From the NCBI GenBank assembly GCA_000708835.1, contig DF237341.1:23108-87107 (forward strand): 64,000 bases of DNA, written 5' to 3'. This document shows, piece by piece, positions 52,004 to 63,357 of this stretch. Each line of letters starts with the position of its first letter. Within the stretch, counting starts at the first letter, position 1. The notes below the pieces were generated by a model. That model searched no databases, had not been told where the DNA came from, and was given only the letters and a program-made list of their open reading frames with translations. Made by a program: the position numbers and the translations under genes. This DNA comes from Klebsormidium nitens. Its lineage: Eukaryota; Plantae; Klebsormidiophyceae.

Positions 52004-54007
52004 GGGGGTGGGGAGTACCTGGAAGCTGGAGAAGAGGCGGTGCCTACTTCGAAGTGGTAAAGAAACACTGACGGGTAAAATAAGGGGACTCGTCTGAAGC
52101 AGGAGAGTCGCGCCTGCTGTGTGAGAGCATTGAGCACATGTGAATAGCCGCCAACCGCAGCTGTAGTTCTTTCGATAAGGAAGTAGTAGAGTCAAAAAGA
52201 TTGCCTGCATTGAAATGCTTACGCTAACTTGTAAGCAGTTCGAACGTGGAAGGCTGCATTATGAAGGGGTGTGTCCGTCCGAAGAAAACACTTTTGGTAG
52301 AACATTGAACATGTAAGAGGCTTCGTAACCATGGTTTCGTCGTGAACAATCCTGGGTGCCGGTGAAATCGTAGGTCGTTGCGCCTTGAGCTCATGACCCT
52401 TCGTCATTCTTCATTTCCTGGCCAACGTGACTCGAAAAGCACGATAAGGGTTCTTTCTCGAGCCATTTGAGGAGGTGGCACAATGTGTGACAGATGCATT
52501 GGTCATATTGCCTTAGGCTGGATTCTTTCGCCACAAACCTTGACTCATGTCCTGCTTGCCACGGCACATCAGAACATCACATCGACGTGCCACATGAAAT
52601 TTTCGTGACAATCTGTGAAGAATCTGCCTACTAGGATTCTCCGCATATGACATACTACAGTGCCACAGCAAGGAGTCTTCGACTAATGTTTAGCACAAGG
52701 GGTGACGTGTTATAACCACAATCAGATGGTAAAAACCTGCTTTTAGCTTATGCTGCAAGTTCTCTCAAAGAGATAAAGTGTTGCGAAGCAAGGGTCTCGC
52801 GCTCCACCCTAACACAACAATATCACTTCGTTGTCGTTAAAGCTGCAAATCTCGACGGGCTTGTTCCAACCTTTGATTCATTTCAGGACAAAGGCAGATG
52901 TGGGTGGCGCAGCTTGGCAGCTTGGTACATAACCACAATGGCGCGATAGAAGGCACACATATACATTCAGAACTTCATCTCATTGCAGGCTTACTGTGTT
53001 TTCAAAACGACGATCACCAGGAATTCTGGGTTCGAGAAGAGGGGCACTTGAAGTTACAATTACCTTGTTTTCTACTTCCTAATGCTTCCCCAATGGACAT
53101 AACAATCGGGTAACAATCTGCATTTGCTCGTATAATGTGAACATGAGCTCAGCCATATATAACAATATTAAAAGCAAGGCAGACTAATAAGTGGGTAATA
53201 CGACGTACAGCGCGGAACACCGCCGCCGGGAGGATACCTAGCAACAGAAGCAGAGAGGCGTTGAAGTTCCGCACCACCATGGCAAGCTACCTAGTAAGTT
53301 AGTAACATAGATAAAGTTAGTACGTAGATATCTACTGCATAGGTAGGACCTAGGTAACCGTCGGCAGTCCTGTGTTTGGCCGCAATCCAACCGGTGGCAG
53401 GCAACTTGCAGAATCTTCAATCAAGGGTCCCAGATGCGCCACCTCAAGCAAACAAGGGTTTAAGGGACATGTGTTGAGTTTATGTCCGTCGATGAATCGA
53501 TGGACTTTACCTTTTGTGTCACGTGGTTTCAAAAAGTGCCAATCAGCGATGGACTCGTGAACTTCCGCCTAGAGCGCTGTGTGCATGCACACCACACCTC
53601 GATGATCTCATGCCCTGGAGCTCGTGAGAGACCGTTGTCAAGCTTTTTGGGGACGTCACTACACTATTATCTGCCTGCTATCTACGAACTAGATCTGGAA
53701 ATTCACATGTTTTGCCTACATTCAGCATTAGGTGAGGAAGGGGCGGTGTGGGATCTGGGAGCTTAAGAGCTTGGCATTTGGAGCTCGACGGGCTCTTGCG
53801 TTCATGTTCCGTGGGCTCTGTTGGTTGTAACGAGGTTTGATGTAGGCTATCAAGTCACGACTTAAGTGACACAGGTGGTAAAGGGTGCGGGGTTGTAAGC
53901 GGTGGCCAAGATTTGAACATCTTTTAAACAAACACTGCGGCATTTGATGCAGAAGTAGGGAAATACAGGGCAAAGACCACAGATAGTTGCAAGAAAGGTT
54001 CAGTAAG

Positions 54008-57000
54008 ATGGCGACCAAACCAGGTGTGCTGTCAGAATGGCCTTGGCAGAGGATGGGCAACTATAAGGTGAGTCTTCCGAACAATGGTTTGCTGCGCTCC
54101 CACATGGTCTTAGGGTCCGTGCTATCTCAAACCGATTGGTTGGTAAGGGGTTGTACTTGTTCTGTGGACCAGATCTGCAAGGATGCTGGGCTCTGTGTTC
54201 GAGATCTTGGATTCTGCATCTTGACATTATTGTGAAGAGAGATTTGTGAACCCATTTGTACTCCCTGAGCTGAAGCTGTTCATCATCCCTAAGTCTGCTG
54301 CCGGGTGCTTTAGAGCCTGCATTCACCGTGTTTGTTCCGTTTGGAGGGGCAGATTTATCTTCTGTGTGGCAGAGCTCACATTTGGAGCTGTCACCAAGCA
54401 AATGCCTCCGCTTAGAGCACTTATCTAGTGGACTCAATGTGGCTTGCCTGGTAACCATTGGGTGCTGCTTATTCTAGACAGCCTCTCAGTCACTTAAGGT
54501 CTGAGGTAGAGAAACCTTTTCGCAGACTGGTGCGTTGTTCTGGTTTTGTTTGGCTGCAAGATTTGCGACAGCTTTTCTTCTGCGCTAGCATGTAGACACT
54601 CGTTGTTGTTGAGCTGAGAGGCAGTGCTGCAGCAGCTCTGTAGCAGCGCGAGCATGCAGGTTCACTTTATGCTCTGCACTGTGAACCTGATTTGCGCAGA
54701 CTCTGAAACAACCTCCAGTCACTCTTAGCTACTCCGGGGTTGAAAAAAAAAAGAGGCGCCACATTCTTGCCAGTTGCAGGAGTCTACCGTTAAGAACATT
54801 GTGACCCTTTGAAATCTGGTGTTGATTAGCTTCGAATCCATTCCTTTCACTCAGAGCAACAATTTGTCTTGTAAAAGGTTTCAGACACTCATTTATTGTC
54901 CACTATATTTTGGCCCACTCTCAGACAGGTCTGGATAAGCACACCTGCGTCTTTGGTTCACTGTATTGACCATCCCAAATAAATGGGCGCATCTGGATTT
55001 GCACCAAGCAGAGCCGGTCATACGTCAAAGGCGTTCATTGGTAGCTCGCAGGCAAAATTCAAACCTCGTCCAGCCAACGCACATCGATGAAGTTTGCACA
55101 CCCAATTGCTCAGGATTGATACTTTCCTTCAGAGACCGCATCTAATGCAAGCAGGTCTGTATCTAAATCAGTGCGACAAGTGCTGCAGGGACCTTGGGGT
55201 CTTCAGTAGCTAGAATAAACAGTAAGATGACCGCTTCTTTTGGGTTGTTATCTCTTCAAGGCCCTAACTCTTTCAACCGAGTCTTATTGAACGTATCCTG
55301 ACACCGGCCTTTCTGCTGCAGTATGTGCTTTACGCTCCATATGTGGCTGCGGCAGCTTACGAGTGGGGCTACCAGGGCAAAGCAAACGAGTTCATTGCTT
55401 ACAACGCACACCTTGGGGTTATTGCCGCCCTTCGCTACGTGGTTATGCAGATCTGGACTTCCATAGCTCGCTTTCCCTGGCTTGTGGGGAAGTACCAGAT
55501 ATCATCAAAGGGGATAGATTTCAAGCAAGTTGATAGAGAGGACAGCTGGTAAGCACATAAGTACTTACTTTAGCACAGTCCCTGCCTTCTTGCTCTCCTA
55601 AGTAGGTGCTTCTAACTGCAGTTCTGATCTTGAAGAGTGGAAACGGGAGGCATCAAGCAGGCGGAAGTGGTGACATTTTGACAGCTTGTAAGTGGTTGGG
55701 AAAGGGCACAGTTACATTGTCCCAACGATCTGGCGTTCATAGCCTTTGTTCAACAAAAATGCAGACAGGTGTTTATCTAGCCACATGTGAATTCGTTCGA
55801 AGGGAAGCATTAAAGATGCGCACTTGTTATTAAGATCTTGAGCATCTTTGCGCACCATCGTACCTGTCCCCAGTTTGATATTGGCTTGCAATCACTAATG
55901 CATGTCAGGAGATGCTGAACTTTTCCCTTGAGACTTTGATCCAAATGGACGCAGCGGGCAAACATTGCCGCTTGCGAGGCGCTACGTAACCACACACGCT
56001 GGGGTGGAGGCAGGCGCACACATTGCCACTCAAGAGTCTGGTCATGCTGCACTCCGAACCCCTCCTGAAGAACACTCACAACATCTGGTGTGCGCGCAGG
56101 GACGACTTCATCTTGTTCAACAGCCTGGGGCTGACCCTGCTGGGCCTGGTGCTGCCCGGGTGGCAGACGCTGCCGCTGGTGAACGGGCACGGCCTGGTGG
56201 TGATGCTACTGCTGCACGCCAGTGTGGCGGAGTGGCTCTACTACTGGTTCCACCGCGCGCTGCACCACCACTGGCTCTACACGCGCTACCACTCGCACCA
56301 CCACCAGTCCTTTGTCACCGAGCCCATCACAGGTGCGCAGGGCTTTCACAACGTCAGATGTGCAAGGCAGGCCGGCATGCTAGATACAGAACCTCAGGCG
56401 CGTTGTCAGTGACGGGATGTGCTTGATGTATGTTTCTATCTGCAAACCCTTGGCAAACTCCAGTCAGCACTCTCGTCGCTCAGTCTGTTTGGTGCCCTGA
56501 TATCTCCGGATTTGGAAAGAGCGTCTTAGTAGAAACTGGCGAAAGCCTACCTTTTGTCTTGGTGGAAAGATGCAGGAGTTCTCTGCTTTGCTATTTCGTC
56601 CACGTCACAATGCTGCGTGACGGTGATACAATAAGAGGCTGCAAGAGCCTGTTTTGGCTGCCAACTCACAGTGGTCCCCCGCTGGCGTGCAGGGTCGGTG
56701 CACCCCTTTCTGGAGCACGTGGGGTATATTGCCATTTTTGCGCTGCCAGGCGTGCTGACTTATGTGGGGGGTCAAGGGTCGATTGCCATGATCTATGCGT
56801 ACCTGCTCACATTCGACTTCCTCAACGGCCTGGGCCACTGCAACTTCGAGTTCATCCCCACCTGGTTCTTCAAGGCCTTCCCCCCCCTCAAGTACCTCAT
56901 TTACACCCCCTCGTAAGTGCTCCGCAAATTCGACATCAGTTCCTTCTCGACCAGCCACAGCATTGCGAATCTCCGCACCTGAAGGTCCCTCCCCTGGAAT

Positions 57001-60000
57001 AGCAGAAGAATCCTAAGAGGGCGTTGCAGGACAGGTTCTACCTCAGGCGACCAATTTGACACCCATTAGGGGCAGCTTGGGTGCCAAAGGGGTTTCTCGA
57101 GATGGAATCTTGAGCCGTCGATGGCTTTTCGCCTCAGCACTCAGATGCGCGAATGTACGCTGAAATCCGACCCCCTTTTTAATGGCGGATAGTGATTTGG
57201 GATCAGTGCAGCCAAAATCAGTGTCATCAAGCTTGGAATGGCTGCTCGTTGGAAAGGCATTGAAGATGCACCGTTGCTTTGCAGGTACCACTCTCTGCAC
57301 CACACGCGCGTCCACACAAACTTCTCGCTCTTCATGCCGCTGTATGACTACCTATATGGCACAGTCGACAATGACAGCGACACGCTCTACGAGCAGACCA
57401 TAAAAGGTAAGGGGGAACAAGATTGCCAACATACTCAGGAATGAGCTTGTCTGCATGCGTGAAGACAGTGACGACCATATGCAGTGCTTTGTGATTGACA
57501 TCCTGTCTTCTACATTGTCAACTCAAAAGGAAAGGCAATTCTGTGGCAGATTACGGAGCACTGGCCCCTCATTTTGAACACTGATACTTGTCGGACATTC
57601 CCTGAACGAGAGTCGGCCGTGGCAATCAGCAACAGTGGGTGGTCCAATCTGATGATCTAAGTGACTCAGATCGTTCAAGGAGTGAACTATAAACTAGCAC
57701 AGAATCCTAGGGCTTGTTCCACTCACTCTTCTCTGCCACCCTTCTGTCTCCTAAGCTGACGCCCGTCCTTTTCGCTGGCAGGAGTCCACCCCGGCCCGGA
57801 CGCCATCTTTTTGGCCCACGGCATGGACGTCGGCTCGTTTGTGCACGGCTGCTTTGGCATTCGCGGGCTGGCCTCCCACCCGTACTATCCTTCGTGGGTG
57901 GTGTACCCGCTGCTCCCGCTGGCCACCCTGCTCACCATCTTCTGCTGGCTCATTGACGCCAAGCCCTGGGCCGTGGATCGCCGCTCCCTGCGCGGAAACA
58001 AGATCGAGCTCTGGACCGTGCCCCGGATGGGCCTCCAGGTAAGCGCAGCCTTGTGCACGGGAAAGCAAGCGGAATGACGGGCCTTTCCAGGTTATGTTCC
58101 CCAAAGCTTCGAGGTTGATTCCTTTGGCGTGCGACTTTTCGCATATTATGGCAAACAAAACCCATTCCTGTGTCGCCTTCCATTGAAACTTGTACGGGAT
58201 CGATGAGATGTCCTTAAAAGAAGACGGCTTCTTCAACCTCATTCGTTAGGTAGGTGTTTTGTGGTCTTGACTGGCAGGATCGACTTATCGTATTGACGCT
58301 TCTCGCCCGCACGTCTCTGCAGTACTTCTTCCCCTCTGAGAGGCCCAAGATCAACCGCCTGATCCTTCAGACGCTCAAGAAGTGCGACGCGAACGGTGTG
58401 AAAGTCTTTGGACTGGGCGCACTGAACAAGGTGGGCCCTTACCCCCATTCTCGTCCGCCAGCTATGTCGATCGGCCTACGTCTGACAGAATCCCGCTTAC
58501 CCGTATGCACCAAGCGTGCCTGCGAGCGGCCGCTTTTCATGGCAATCGTGCACGTTTCTATCGCCTGTAGAAAGCACACCTTCTGACGTCAGCAGTTGCG
58601 TTTCGTGGTTGCAGAGCGAGGCGCTGAACCAGGGGGGCGAGATCTACCGGAAGGACATCGAGGGGCTGCGCATGCGCGTGGTGCACGGCAACACGCTGAC
58701 CGCGGCCTCCATCCTGCACCGGCTGCCGCAGGACTGCGACGAGATCTTCTTGACGGGGGGCACCTCCAAGCTGGGTCGGGCGCTCGCCCTCTACCTCGTG
58801 CGGAAGGGGGTCCGCGTGCTGGTCAGTGCCAGGCTCGTTTTAGGGATTCACTATCATATTGCTGCAGATGGACTCAGTGCAACTGGTATCTCTCTTATGG
58901 ATGCCAGCAAAAGAAGCCATGTCTGCCACGATTGTGCCCGGAAGGACCAAGAGAATGCACCCTGCATCTCAGCTAGTAAAGTGACGTGCGATCCCGGTCA
59001 CATGCGTAGCTGATGTTCGTGTGTGTGTGCAGCTGCACACGAAGTCTCAGGAGCGGTTCCAGGCCATTGTCGACGAGGCCGCGCCCGAGCATCGAAAATA
59101 CTTGGTCTGGTCTCCCAACTTAACGGATGGCAGCCACTGCAAGGTCAGCCCTGATTCTTGTCCTCACAGTGCCATGATGGACGCGGCACAGTCCATATGC
59201 AGATTTCCACGGTGTGTTTCTGGGGTTGTTGGCCTAAGAATGAGGACTCGACGAATGAAGTCCCTCTAGTCTCCCTTCAAAGCCCCGCCCTGCATGACGA
59301 GCAGCCCGAAACCGTTGGTTTTTATGTTTTCAATTTCGTTGGTGCAGAACTGGGTGGTTGGGCGGTGGCACTCGCGCAAGGAGCAGGCGTTCGCCCCGGC
59401 TGGGACGCACTTCCACCAGTTCGTGGTCCCGCTCATGACGCCCGCCAGGAAGGACTGCACCTACAGCAAGCAAATATGCATGCGGATGCCCAAGGTGCGC
59501 ACCCTTACCCAAGCCGCCCGATACGGCCCGCTGGAAGTCCAACACTGCCTCCTGCCTGCTCTTGTATCCGTTGCGTTTGAAGTCTTTCTTATCGAGGCAA
59601 GGAAATCGTCAATGAGCACTTGGCGACAGAGCCAGTCGCACGTGCCAATGGTGAAGATTGAAGGACATCAATCACTTGAGGAAGCAACAGAAGCGTAGTG
59701 CTCCGAGGAAACGGTGATAAATCTGCGTAGTGCTCATTCGTCAAATGCTTACGAGGTCCATCACCTTGGCTGCAGGATACCCAGGGTCTGGGTCACTGCG
59801 AGTTGAACTTACAGAGGAATACCGTGCACGCGTGCCATGCTGCCGTCATCGTGCACTTATTAGAAGGGTGGGACTTCCACGAGGTGAGCCAGCCGCGCAA
59901 AACAATAAGAGTACTAGGTGCTTGCCTTTCCTGGGCTTTTCGTACTCGTGGTCTTTGAATGGATATTCTCCTGTAGACCTGGAGCGAGCAAGAATATGTC

Positions 60001-60124
60001 GATCCGTTGTCATCCATCTGACCCGACCCTGTTTCTGTCGATGCAGTTGGGCTCTATTAACGTAGATCGCATTGACGAAAATTGGGAGGCCGCTTTGAAG
60101 CACGGATTTGAGCCCGTTTCTTGA
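54008..60124 (+). CDS. CER1/CER3: ECERIFERUM1/3-family very-long-chain alkane biosynthesis protein (fatty acid hydroxylase domain + WAX2 C-terminal domain), 12 exons
   Basis: [13 protein letters not shown]...[10 protein letters not shown]...YHSHHH...VTEPIT...HPFLEH...GHCNFE...YTPSYHSLHH...LFMPLYDY...[15 protein letters not shown]...[11 protein letters not shown]...[17 protein letters not shown]...[10 protein letters not shown]...RNTVHACHA...[10 protein letters not shown]...[11 protein letters not shown]. Confidence 0.95.
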
Positions 60125-61942: not shown

Positions 61943-63357
61943 CTACTCTTGCGGGCCCATCATGGCGGCCATGCGCTTCTTGAGCTCCTCGGGCGGGACG
62001 TCCTCCACATGCGTCGATATGGTCCATTTGTGCCCGAACGGGTCCACCACCGTCCCCGAGCGGTCCCCGTAAAAGTGCGTCTGCACGGGGGCCTGTACCG
62101 TGGCCCCCTCCTTGACCGCGCGCTCAAACGCCGCCTCCGAGTCGTCCACGTACAGCATGAGGCCCACGGGACTGCCCCCCAGGCTGGCGGGCGACTTGTG
62201 GCCGCGCTCGGGGACCTCGTCGGCCAGCATGAACGGGCTGTCGCCGATGCGCATCTCGGCGTGCATGATGGTCCCGCCGGGCCCGTCCATCTTGACAGTC
62301 TCGACGGCGCCGAAGGCCCGCGCGTAGAAACCCATGGCTTGGGTGGCACCCTTGACGACCAGGTAAGGGGTGATCTGCAAGCAAGGGAGGCCATAGGGTC
62401 AACTGAATTTGAGATGATAGGTCTGTCAAAACACTAAAGGATGCTAGCAGCAAGCACCTAGATGGACTTAAGTTTCAGTTGAGATGGAGGCGACTGCGAA
62501 GGTTTTGAAACATTACAACTTCTCGGACGAAACGAGATCGAAGATGGAAAAAGCAGGGGGAGCTGATATAAGAATCGTTGCTTCGGAAGAAAAGTTGGAA
62601 GCAAGAAAGGATGCTTGGTGTGCAAGTGCAGCTACAGATGAAAATGATGAGATTTGAAAGAAACAACCAGATCACAACAAACTTCGAGAATGAAAAGAAT
62701 CTTCGGAAGGACTGACTTGATTGGCTGCCAGACTTGGTAATTCAAGACAATATTCTGTGGGAGCTGATTTCAAGGCTATAGTAAAGTGCGGACACGAGAA
62801 GACAAACATAGGGATGTTCTGTGTTTGGAAGACAAAACGTGGGGGTCATCGAGACTTGACAGTTTCAAAATCAGGACGAAGCTGCAAGTTTCAAAGTCGC
62901 ATCAACCTTTGGTCCACAGACAACTGGGCACAAGTTTTCTCAAACCGGAGTAGAAGATGTCTTGCTTCTACCCAGTGAGCAATCGAGCATCAACTGCCCC
63001 CCTGGCTGACAAGGCCGTTCAAGATGATGCTTTGAGGCGTGTCATCAGATTCCTTGTAAGTGGGCTCAACTTCGTAAACAGATAATCAGTGCATTTGCAG
63101 CTTGCACACGACGATCGGCGTTGAGCTTCATGCCTAGCTGTAGACTCCAGTGCAGCTGCCACGACCAACGAACTTGATCTCTTGCCAGTTCTAATCAAGC
63201 CTGTAGCTAGGCTCAGAACAGCACAGCCACAGCACAGCATTGGACGGATGCATTGGACAATTTGATATGTAGAAGCTGGCGAAACCAGTCAAATGAGGGA
63301 GTCACATGAACTCACCGTATGAAACCCCTTAGGACGTGTCTCGACGGCACTGGCCAT
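61943..63357 (-). CDS. VOC/glyoxalase-superfamily (PhnB-like) protein, bacterial type, 2 exons (63357-63316, 62374-61943), 157 aa
   Basis: Exon 1 ATG...CATACG/gtgag encodes MASAVETRPKGFHT. It splices in phase 0 to cttgcag/ITPYLVVKGATQAMGFYARAFGA...IMHAEMRIGDSPFMLADE...SLGGSPVGLMLYVDD...FERAVKEGA...FYGDRSGTVVDPFGHKWTISTH. This is the classic bacterial PhnB-like VOC pattern. Confidence 0.92.

Follow-up and report, generated by a model that had tools for sequence, protein, structure and literature searches.

Alkane formation in land plants is divided between two paralogues, a CER1 that no longer has the Cys or the nucleotide-binding loop and a CER3 in which His box 1 is degenerate; substrates of C24-C32 are turned into cuticular products. 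A locus of the streptophyte green alga Klebsormidium nitens raises the question of what preceded this division, and whether a single protein could carry both activities. It lies in a 64-kb stretch of genomic DNA, hereafter the window. A first-pass annotation had described it as a single CER1/CER3 hybrid gene that keeps both sets of catalytic signatures, may perform both steps by itself and may represent the state before the duplication. Here we examine whether the locus is an expressed gene, how its mixed appearance should be read, and where it stands with respect to the CER1/CER3 duplication.

Between 54008 and 60124 on the forward strand, stop-free stretches in all three frames tile along CER1/CER3-type proteins. 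Splicing yields a frame of 1878 nt in 12 exons, with all borders GT..AG, that encodes 625 aa and has no internal stops (Table 1). Ten of the introns were recovered as GT..AG joints in transcript contigs from four runs of four studies, with window positions 54000-59999 covered. At intron 11 a shared contig loose end at 59883 continues into the first bases of exon 12 (60047), and the whole message is found on single transcript contigs of 2.5-2.6 kb. The locus is a real, expressed gene and no chance pattern. In RNA run X5 low-depth contigs also occur inside introns 1, 2 and 4 (window 54200-56000 and 56941-57314), with a depth of 1-10 versus 160-215 for exons; precursor RNA that had not yet been spliced, or carried-over DNA, is their probable source.

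Table 1. Features of the Klebsormidium CER1/3 locus and its downstream neighbour, in window coordinates
Feature	Position	Strand	Details
CER1/3 CDS span	54008-60124	+	12 exons, 625 aa; stop codon 60122-60124
Exon 1	54008-54067	+	Start codon; 13-residue N-terminal peptide 54008-54046; RNA joint 54067/55322
Exon 2	55322-55548	+	Gene model and RNA contigs
Exon 3	56100-56332	+	His boxes 1 and 2; Pfam, RNA contigs
His box 1, HRALHH	56251-56268	+	Residues 147-152; H147 aligned with OtCER1/3 H142
His box 2, HSHHH	56290-56304	+	Residues 160-164; H160 aligned with OtCER1/3 H155 and AtCER1 H159
VTEPIT	56314-56331	+	Motif mapping
Exon 4	56693-56912	+	Gene model and RNA contigs
Exon 5	57285-57406	+	His box 3; Pfam, RNA contigs
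His box 3, HSLHH	57289-57303	+	Residues 249-253
Exon 6	57782-58038	+	Linker and hydrophobic segment at about residues 327-345; RNA contigs
Exon 7	58323-58430	+	C-terminal domain begins; RNA contigs
Exon 8	58615-58821	+	11-residue peptide 58675-58707 and nucleotide-binding loop; Pfam, RNA contigs
ALNQGG	58621-58638	+	Motif mapping
Putative NADPH-binding loop, TGGTSKLG	58753-58776	+	Residues 456-463; G458/T459 aligned with AtCER3 A461/T462
Exon 9	59033-59143	+	Gene model and RNA contigs
Exon 10	59348-59494	+	10-residue peptide 59402-59431; Pfam, RNA contigs
Exon 11	59776-59883	+	VHACHA; Pfam, RNA contigs
VHACHA	59824-59841	+	Motif mapping
Cys584 codon, putative catalytic Cys	59833-59835	+	Aligned with AtCER3 C587 and OtCER1/3 C581
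Exon 12	60047-60124	+	Includes stop codon; first bases read by RNA loose end at 59883
Glyoxalase/bleomycin-resistance/dioxygenase superfamily ORF	61946-62380	-	Single exon; PF00903, E 4e-13; downstream of CER1/3

The predicted protein combines two domains in one polypeptide, an N-terminal FA_hydroxylase domain (PF04116) and a C-terminal CER1-like_C/WAX2 domain (PF12076). When Pfam was searched exon by exon, the former was matched by exons 3 and 5 and the latter by exons 8, 10 and 11. Motif mapping placed the three His boxes, the loop and the Cys exactly where the first-pass annotation had located them. In context the His motifs read HRALHHH, YHSHHH and YHSLHH, all three intact, and the column of Cys584 is the OtCER1/3 Cys column in the alignment of Fig. 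S1 of bioRxiv 10.1101/2025.10.28.685152. The exon 8 loop (TG..SK.G) bears a weak likeness to the Rossmann loops of short-chain ketoreductases (E about 0.4-0.6). A search for solved structures of CER1/CER3 family members found none.

An alignment of 231 full-length family members was scored for five catalytic signatures. All five are intact in the Klebsormidium protein and in 60 others, every one of which is an algal or bryophyte/lycophyte CER1/3-type protein. His box 1 is degenerate in about 150 CER3-type proteins of this alignment, and the CER1-type proteins are without the Cys and without the loop. What separates CER1, CER3 and CER1/3 is which catalytic signatures survive.

The same protein has already been described. 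The supplement of bioRxiv 10.1101/2025.10.28.685152 holds KnCER1/3 of Klebsormidium nitens NIES-2285 in an alignment and a table (Baca-Porcel et al., bioRxiv 2025; New Phytol 2026, PMC13326499). Its length is 625, as in our model, and its peptides match across all 11 exon junctions. Both termini match as well, the N terminus spanning the exon 1/2 junction and the C terminus ending at 625, and the running counters of the published alignment agree with our numbering at V138, at C584 and at row ends 425, 485 and 605. By this comparison the window gene is the published KnCER1/3; the comparison text was machine-read and contains errors, so that single-residue differences are possible, but reading errors aside no difference was found.

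The published experiments bear directly on the idea that one protein may suffice for both steps. Expressed alone in yeast, KnCER1/3 leads to n-heptadecane (PMC13326499), as the first-pass annotation had anticipated in proposing a one-protein synthase. Co-expression with AtCER3 yields very-long-chain alkanes in addition (PMC13326499), which implies that the N domain of the algal protein can use aldehydes made by the CER3 C domain. A C17 alkane is present in K. nitens cells, and Klebsormidium is reported to have one CER1/3 homologue per genome and no gene for FAP, the fatty acid photodecarboxylase (PMC13326499, Table 1 therein). In the homologue from Ostreococcus tauri, OtCER1/3, mutations at the residues aligned with H147, H160, H249, G458/T459 and C584 abolished hydrocarbon formation, and AtCER3 rescued the Cys mutant while the His-box mutants were not rescued (PMC13326499). 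This pattern of rescue fits two separable steps that communicate via an aldehyde.

A mechanism can be proposed on these grounds. Both active domains would sit in a single membrane protein of the ER type, KnCER1/3. Its C-terminal WAX2/CER1-like_C portion, with a Rossmann-like TGGTSKLG and Cys584, would use NAD(P)H to reduce a fatty acyl-CoA to an aldehyde. From this aldehyde the N-terminal FA-hydroxylase-type domain, with three His boxes predicted to bind di-iron, would remove the carbonyl carbon, leaving a hydrocarbon shortened by one carbon. We infer the aldehyde intermediate from co-expression rather than from isolation, and likewise the cofactors and the role in the alga, and the point mutants are those of the Ostreococcus protein. 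KnCER1/3 would be a descendant of the gene whose duplication and subfunctionalisation produced the CER1 and CER3 of land plants. The reading that KnCER1/3 is a single undivided CER1/CER3 homologue which carries out both steps and belongs to the pre-duplication lineage has, in our estimate, a probability of about 0.92.

The mixed similarity of the two halves is real. The N domain shares 50.4% identity with seed-plant CER1 and 40.9% with angiosperm CER3, whereas the C domain shares 34.8% with CER1 and 52.5% with CER3, so the description of a CER1-like front and a CER3-like back is borne out. The word hybrid is a different matter. A His-box domain at the N terminus is combined with a WAX2 domain at the C terminus in CER1 as well as in CER3 of land plants (PMC13326499), and two domains in one gene do not make a hybrid because every CER1 and CER3 carries both. 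The same asymmetry between N and C domain was found in Spirogloea, Closterium, Tetraselmis, Pyramimonas, Guillardia and Cylindrotheca and in the bryophyte CER1/3-type proteins. The pattern is plesiomorphic and common to every algal homologue compared, and it reflects one-sided divergence of CER1 and CER3 after their duplication, with no mosaic origin. Of the hybrid description, the retention of both signature sets stands, but the term itself is a misnomer for a state that is ancestral and shared by algal CER1/3.

Phylogenies were built from 73 sequences under LG+C20+F+G4. In the careful ML tree of the full-length alignment, Klebsormidium CER1/3 branches off as the sister lineage of Zygnematophyceae and land plants together. 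Support is 98/92 for the clade from which the Klebsormidium gene is left out, 100/99 for the CER1 clade and 100/100 for the CER3 clade. In the N-domain tree the gene falls in a streptophyte polytomy, outside the CER1 and the CER3 clades. A quick C-domain tree proved to be a poor optimum, a constrained tree being 18 lnL higher; a careful search left the placement unchanged and excluded the gene from Zygnematophyceae plus land plants with 96/87 and from land plants with 99/94. Forcing the gene to group with the CER3 clade cost 18.6 lnL (AU test, p 0.049), and forcing it to group with the CER1 clade cost 15.6 lnL (p 0.127). The terminal branch of Klebsormidium CER1/3 is long (0.78).

The protein is thus set apart from land-plant CER1 by its Cys and loop and by an ML placement outside the CER1 clade, and from land-plant CER3 by its intact His box 1 and an ML placement outside the CER3 clade (AU p 0.049). 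The separate domain trees that the first-pass annotation had proposed as a check put both domains outside the CER1 and CER3 clades. The AU tests are not firm against either grouping. The suggested pre-duplication state agrees with the trees obtained here, and the AU tests are borderline (p 0.049 and 0.13). A pre-duplication orthologue is the best-supported reading of these trees, in which both domains are concordant.

Five-motif proteins of bryophytes and lycophytes (P0167, P0188, P0279, P0283, P0284, P0285, P0286 and P0287 of our protein set) adjoin the CER1 clade with 89/72, away from the algal proteins, and may be paralogues on the CER1 side in which the ancestral C-domain site persists. 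Their position is within the land-plant clade, and they occur alongside genes of the CER3 clade, whereas the Klebsormidium gene branches earlier. The proteins of Riccia (P0167), Physcomitrium ('GL1-1', P0188), Sphagnum, Calypogeia and Diphasiastrum are 52-55% identical to KnCER1/3, have the five motifs intact and are among its nearest full-length relatives; in the tree alignment Spirogloea alone comes closer (57%). In the Riccia sorocarpa protein P0285 the Cys is already lost (VHASHA) and the loop is partly lost.

Three other explanations were weighed against the undivided homologue. The gene could be an orthologue of CER3 and nothing more, its product being an acyl-CoA reductase dependent on a distinct CER1-type protein from another locus of the genome. 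Kondo et al. (2016) list a CER3 counterpart for K. nitens and no clear CER1, the C domain is far nearer CER3 (52%) than CER1 (35%), and the AU test rejects the CER3 grouping only marginally. The listing by Kondo et al. fits a single homologue with a CER3-looking C domain. His box 1 is intact where CER3-type proteins have a degenerate one, the N domain is nearer CER1, and the ML trees put the gene outside the CER3 clade. The published KnCER1/3 forms hydrocarbons in yeast without a partner, and one homologue is reported for the genome (PMC13326499); the yeast result largely refutes the explanation, which we consider extremely unlikely. A true hybrid, formed after the duplication by recombination or fusion of CER1 and CER3 paralogues, would account for the mixed similarity pattern, its sole support. 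Such a chimera should be set against N- and C-domain trees that give the same pre-duplication position, with the N domain not inside CER1 and the C domain not inside CER3, and against the occurrence of the same mixture in chlorophyte, cryptophyte and diatom homologues, from lineages in which CER1 and CER3 never existed as separate genes. A second CER1/3 copy is also absent from the 64-kb window, and the probability left for a chimera is negligible.

The remaining explanation concerns chemistry: the enzyme could be active while its native reaction is other than acyl-CoA to aldehyde to alkane, for instance aldehyde release or a path through another intermediate. This was raised by the authors of PMC13326499 themselves, and the products are C17 only. 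The algal CER1/3 proteins nevertheless use aldehydes made by AtCER3, and AtCER3 rescues the Cys mutant of OtCER1/3 and not its His-box mutants (PMC13326499); we regard a different native chemistry as very unlikely. The undivided homologue carrying both steps is accordingly kept as our reading in what follows.

The closest known systems are the CER1/3 proteins of Ostreococcus tauri, Prasinoderma, Mesotaenium and Proteomonas, which have the same domains, His boxes, loop and Cys and are active alone in yeast. Product profiles in yeast differ: KnCER1/3 gives n-heptadecane only, whereas OtCER1/3 gives C15:1, C17:1 and C17:0. The in vivo product of OtCER1/3 is C21:6, and a knockout and point mutants exist for the Ostreococcus gene only. 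Use of AtCER3 aldehydes upon co-expression is reported for all five algal CER1/3 proteins including KnCER1/3, and direct binding to AtCER1 and AtCER3 for OtCER1/3 only (PMC13326499). The Arabidopsis CER1/CER3 heterodimer shows homology to KnCER1/3 over the full length and carries out the same two reactions. More remotely, the N domain is related to yeast Scs7p-type di-iron fatty acid hydroxylases via the PF04116 His-box membrane domain, and was modelled on Scs7p by Kojima et al. (2024); the C domain is remotely related to the Rossmann folds of short-chain dehydrogenases/reductases, with a loop that is weakly alike.

An orthologue with the same 12 exons was found on contig Ga0590115_0001393 of JGI metagenome 3300060285 (L001). 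Alignment of this contig with the window DNA is confined to the exons, at 70-85% identity. Between the two proteins identity is 76.7%, with a dN/dS of about 0.18, and Klebsormidium CER1/3 is under purifying selection. At L001:5153-5389 Tyr stands in place of the first His of His box 2, the contig having RYYSHHH against RYHSHHH in the window; this is a single contig and an assembly error is possible. The changed residue is aligned with H155 of OtCER1/3 and H159 of AtCER1, where a change to Ala impairs hydrocarbon formation. The contig additionally reads GTHFSQFVVP. If the His to Tyr change on this single contig is genuine, close relatives may be losing one activity.

Neither of two protein libraries returned a match to the full-length 625-aa product itself, either in a representative search with exon 8 or in two profile searches with the exon rows. 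The nearest full-length entries are 51-57% identical, and the only nearer match is a 148-aa fragment from a relative (P0002). The product is missing from these libraries, even though several public RNA runs yield assembled contigs of its transcript.

Outside the green algae, most of the CER1/3-type proteins that were checked keep the five motifs. They come from pennate diatoms (Nitzschia, Cylindrotheca), cryptophytes and marine metagenome clusters with up to 434 members, and the set comprises P0317, P0320, P0326, P0070, P0066, P0330, P0487, P0309 and P0359. Full-length two-domain homologues were also observed in Paulinella chromatophora and in the chlorarachniophyte Amorphochlora, both longer than the size window of the motif screen. 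Diatoms and cryptophytes are mentioned in a 2026 review that cites Chaudhary 2021; no mention of Paulinella or chlorarachniophyte CER1/3 was met in the literature examined.

The surroundings of the gene offer no sign of a functional cluster within the window. Comparison of the large flanking ORFs with Pfam gave no matches except for the glyoxalase-family gene downstream (Table 1), no second CER1/3 copy lies within the 64 kb, and no tandem repeats were found in the CER1/3 introns.

The idea of a one-protein alkane synthase is correct but already known, expression of KnCER1/3 alone in yeast having been published in 2025-26. That an ancestral CER1/3 gene was duplicated in land plants has likewise been published, according to papers citing Wang 2019 and Chaudhary 2021. 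Added here are an independent check that locus, splicing and expression fit the published protein, and the observation that the hybrid look is an ancestral state shared by the algal homologues compared.

The products so far are C17 hydrocarbons, as against cuticular alkanes of C25-C35, and the link to the cuticle is one that we infer. It is conceivable, though unlikely in our judgement, that in vivo the protein provides longer-chain or secreted hydrocarbons that aid the desiccation tolerance of this land-dwelling alga, as a functional forerunner of cuticular wax; as a separate matter, a loss of one activity among relatives is put forward just as tentatively. Among what is available, CER1/3 is the best proxy for the gene that, once duplicated, supplied land plants with their two-subunit alkane complex, and as such it bears on the origin of the cuticle, a question that has already been tested in part with KnCER1/3 itself, by its expression in yeast.
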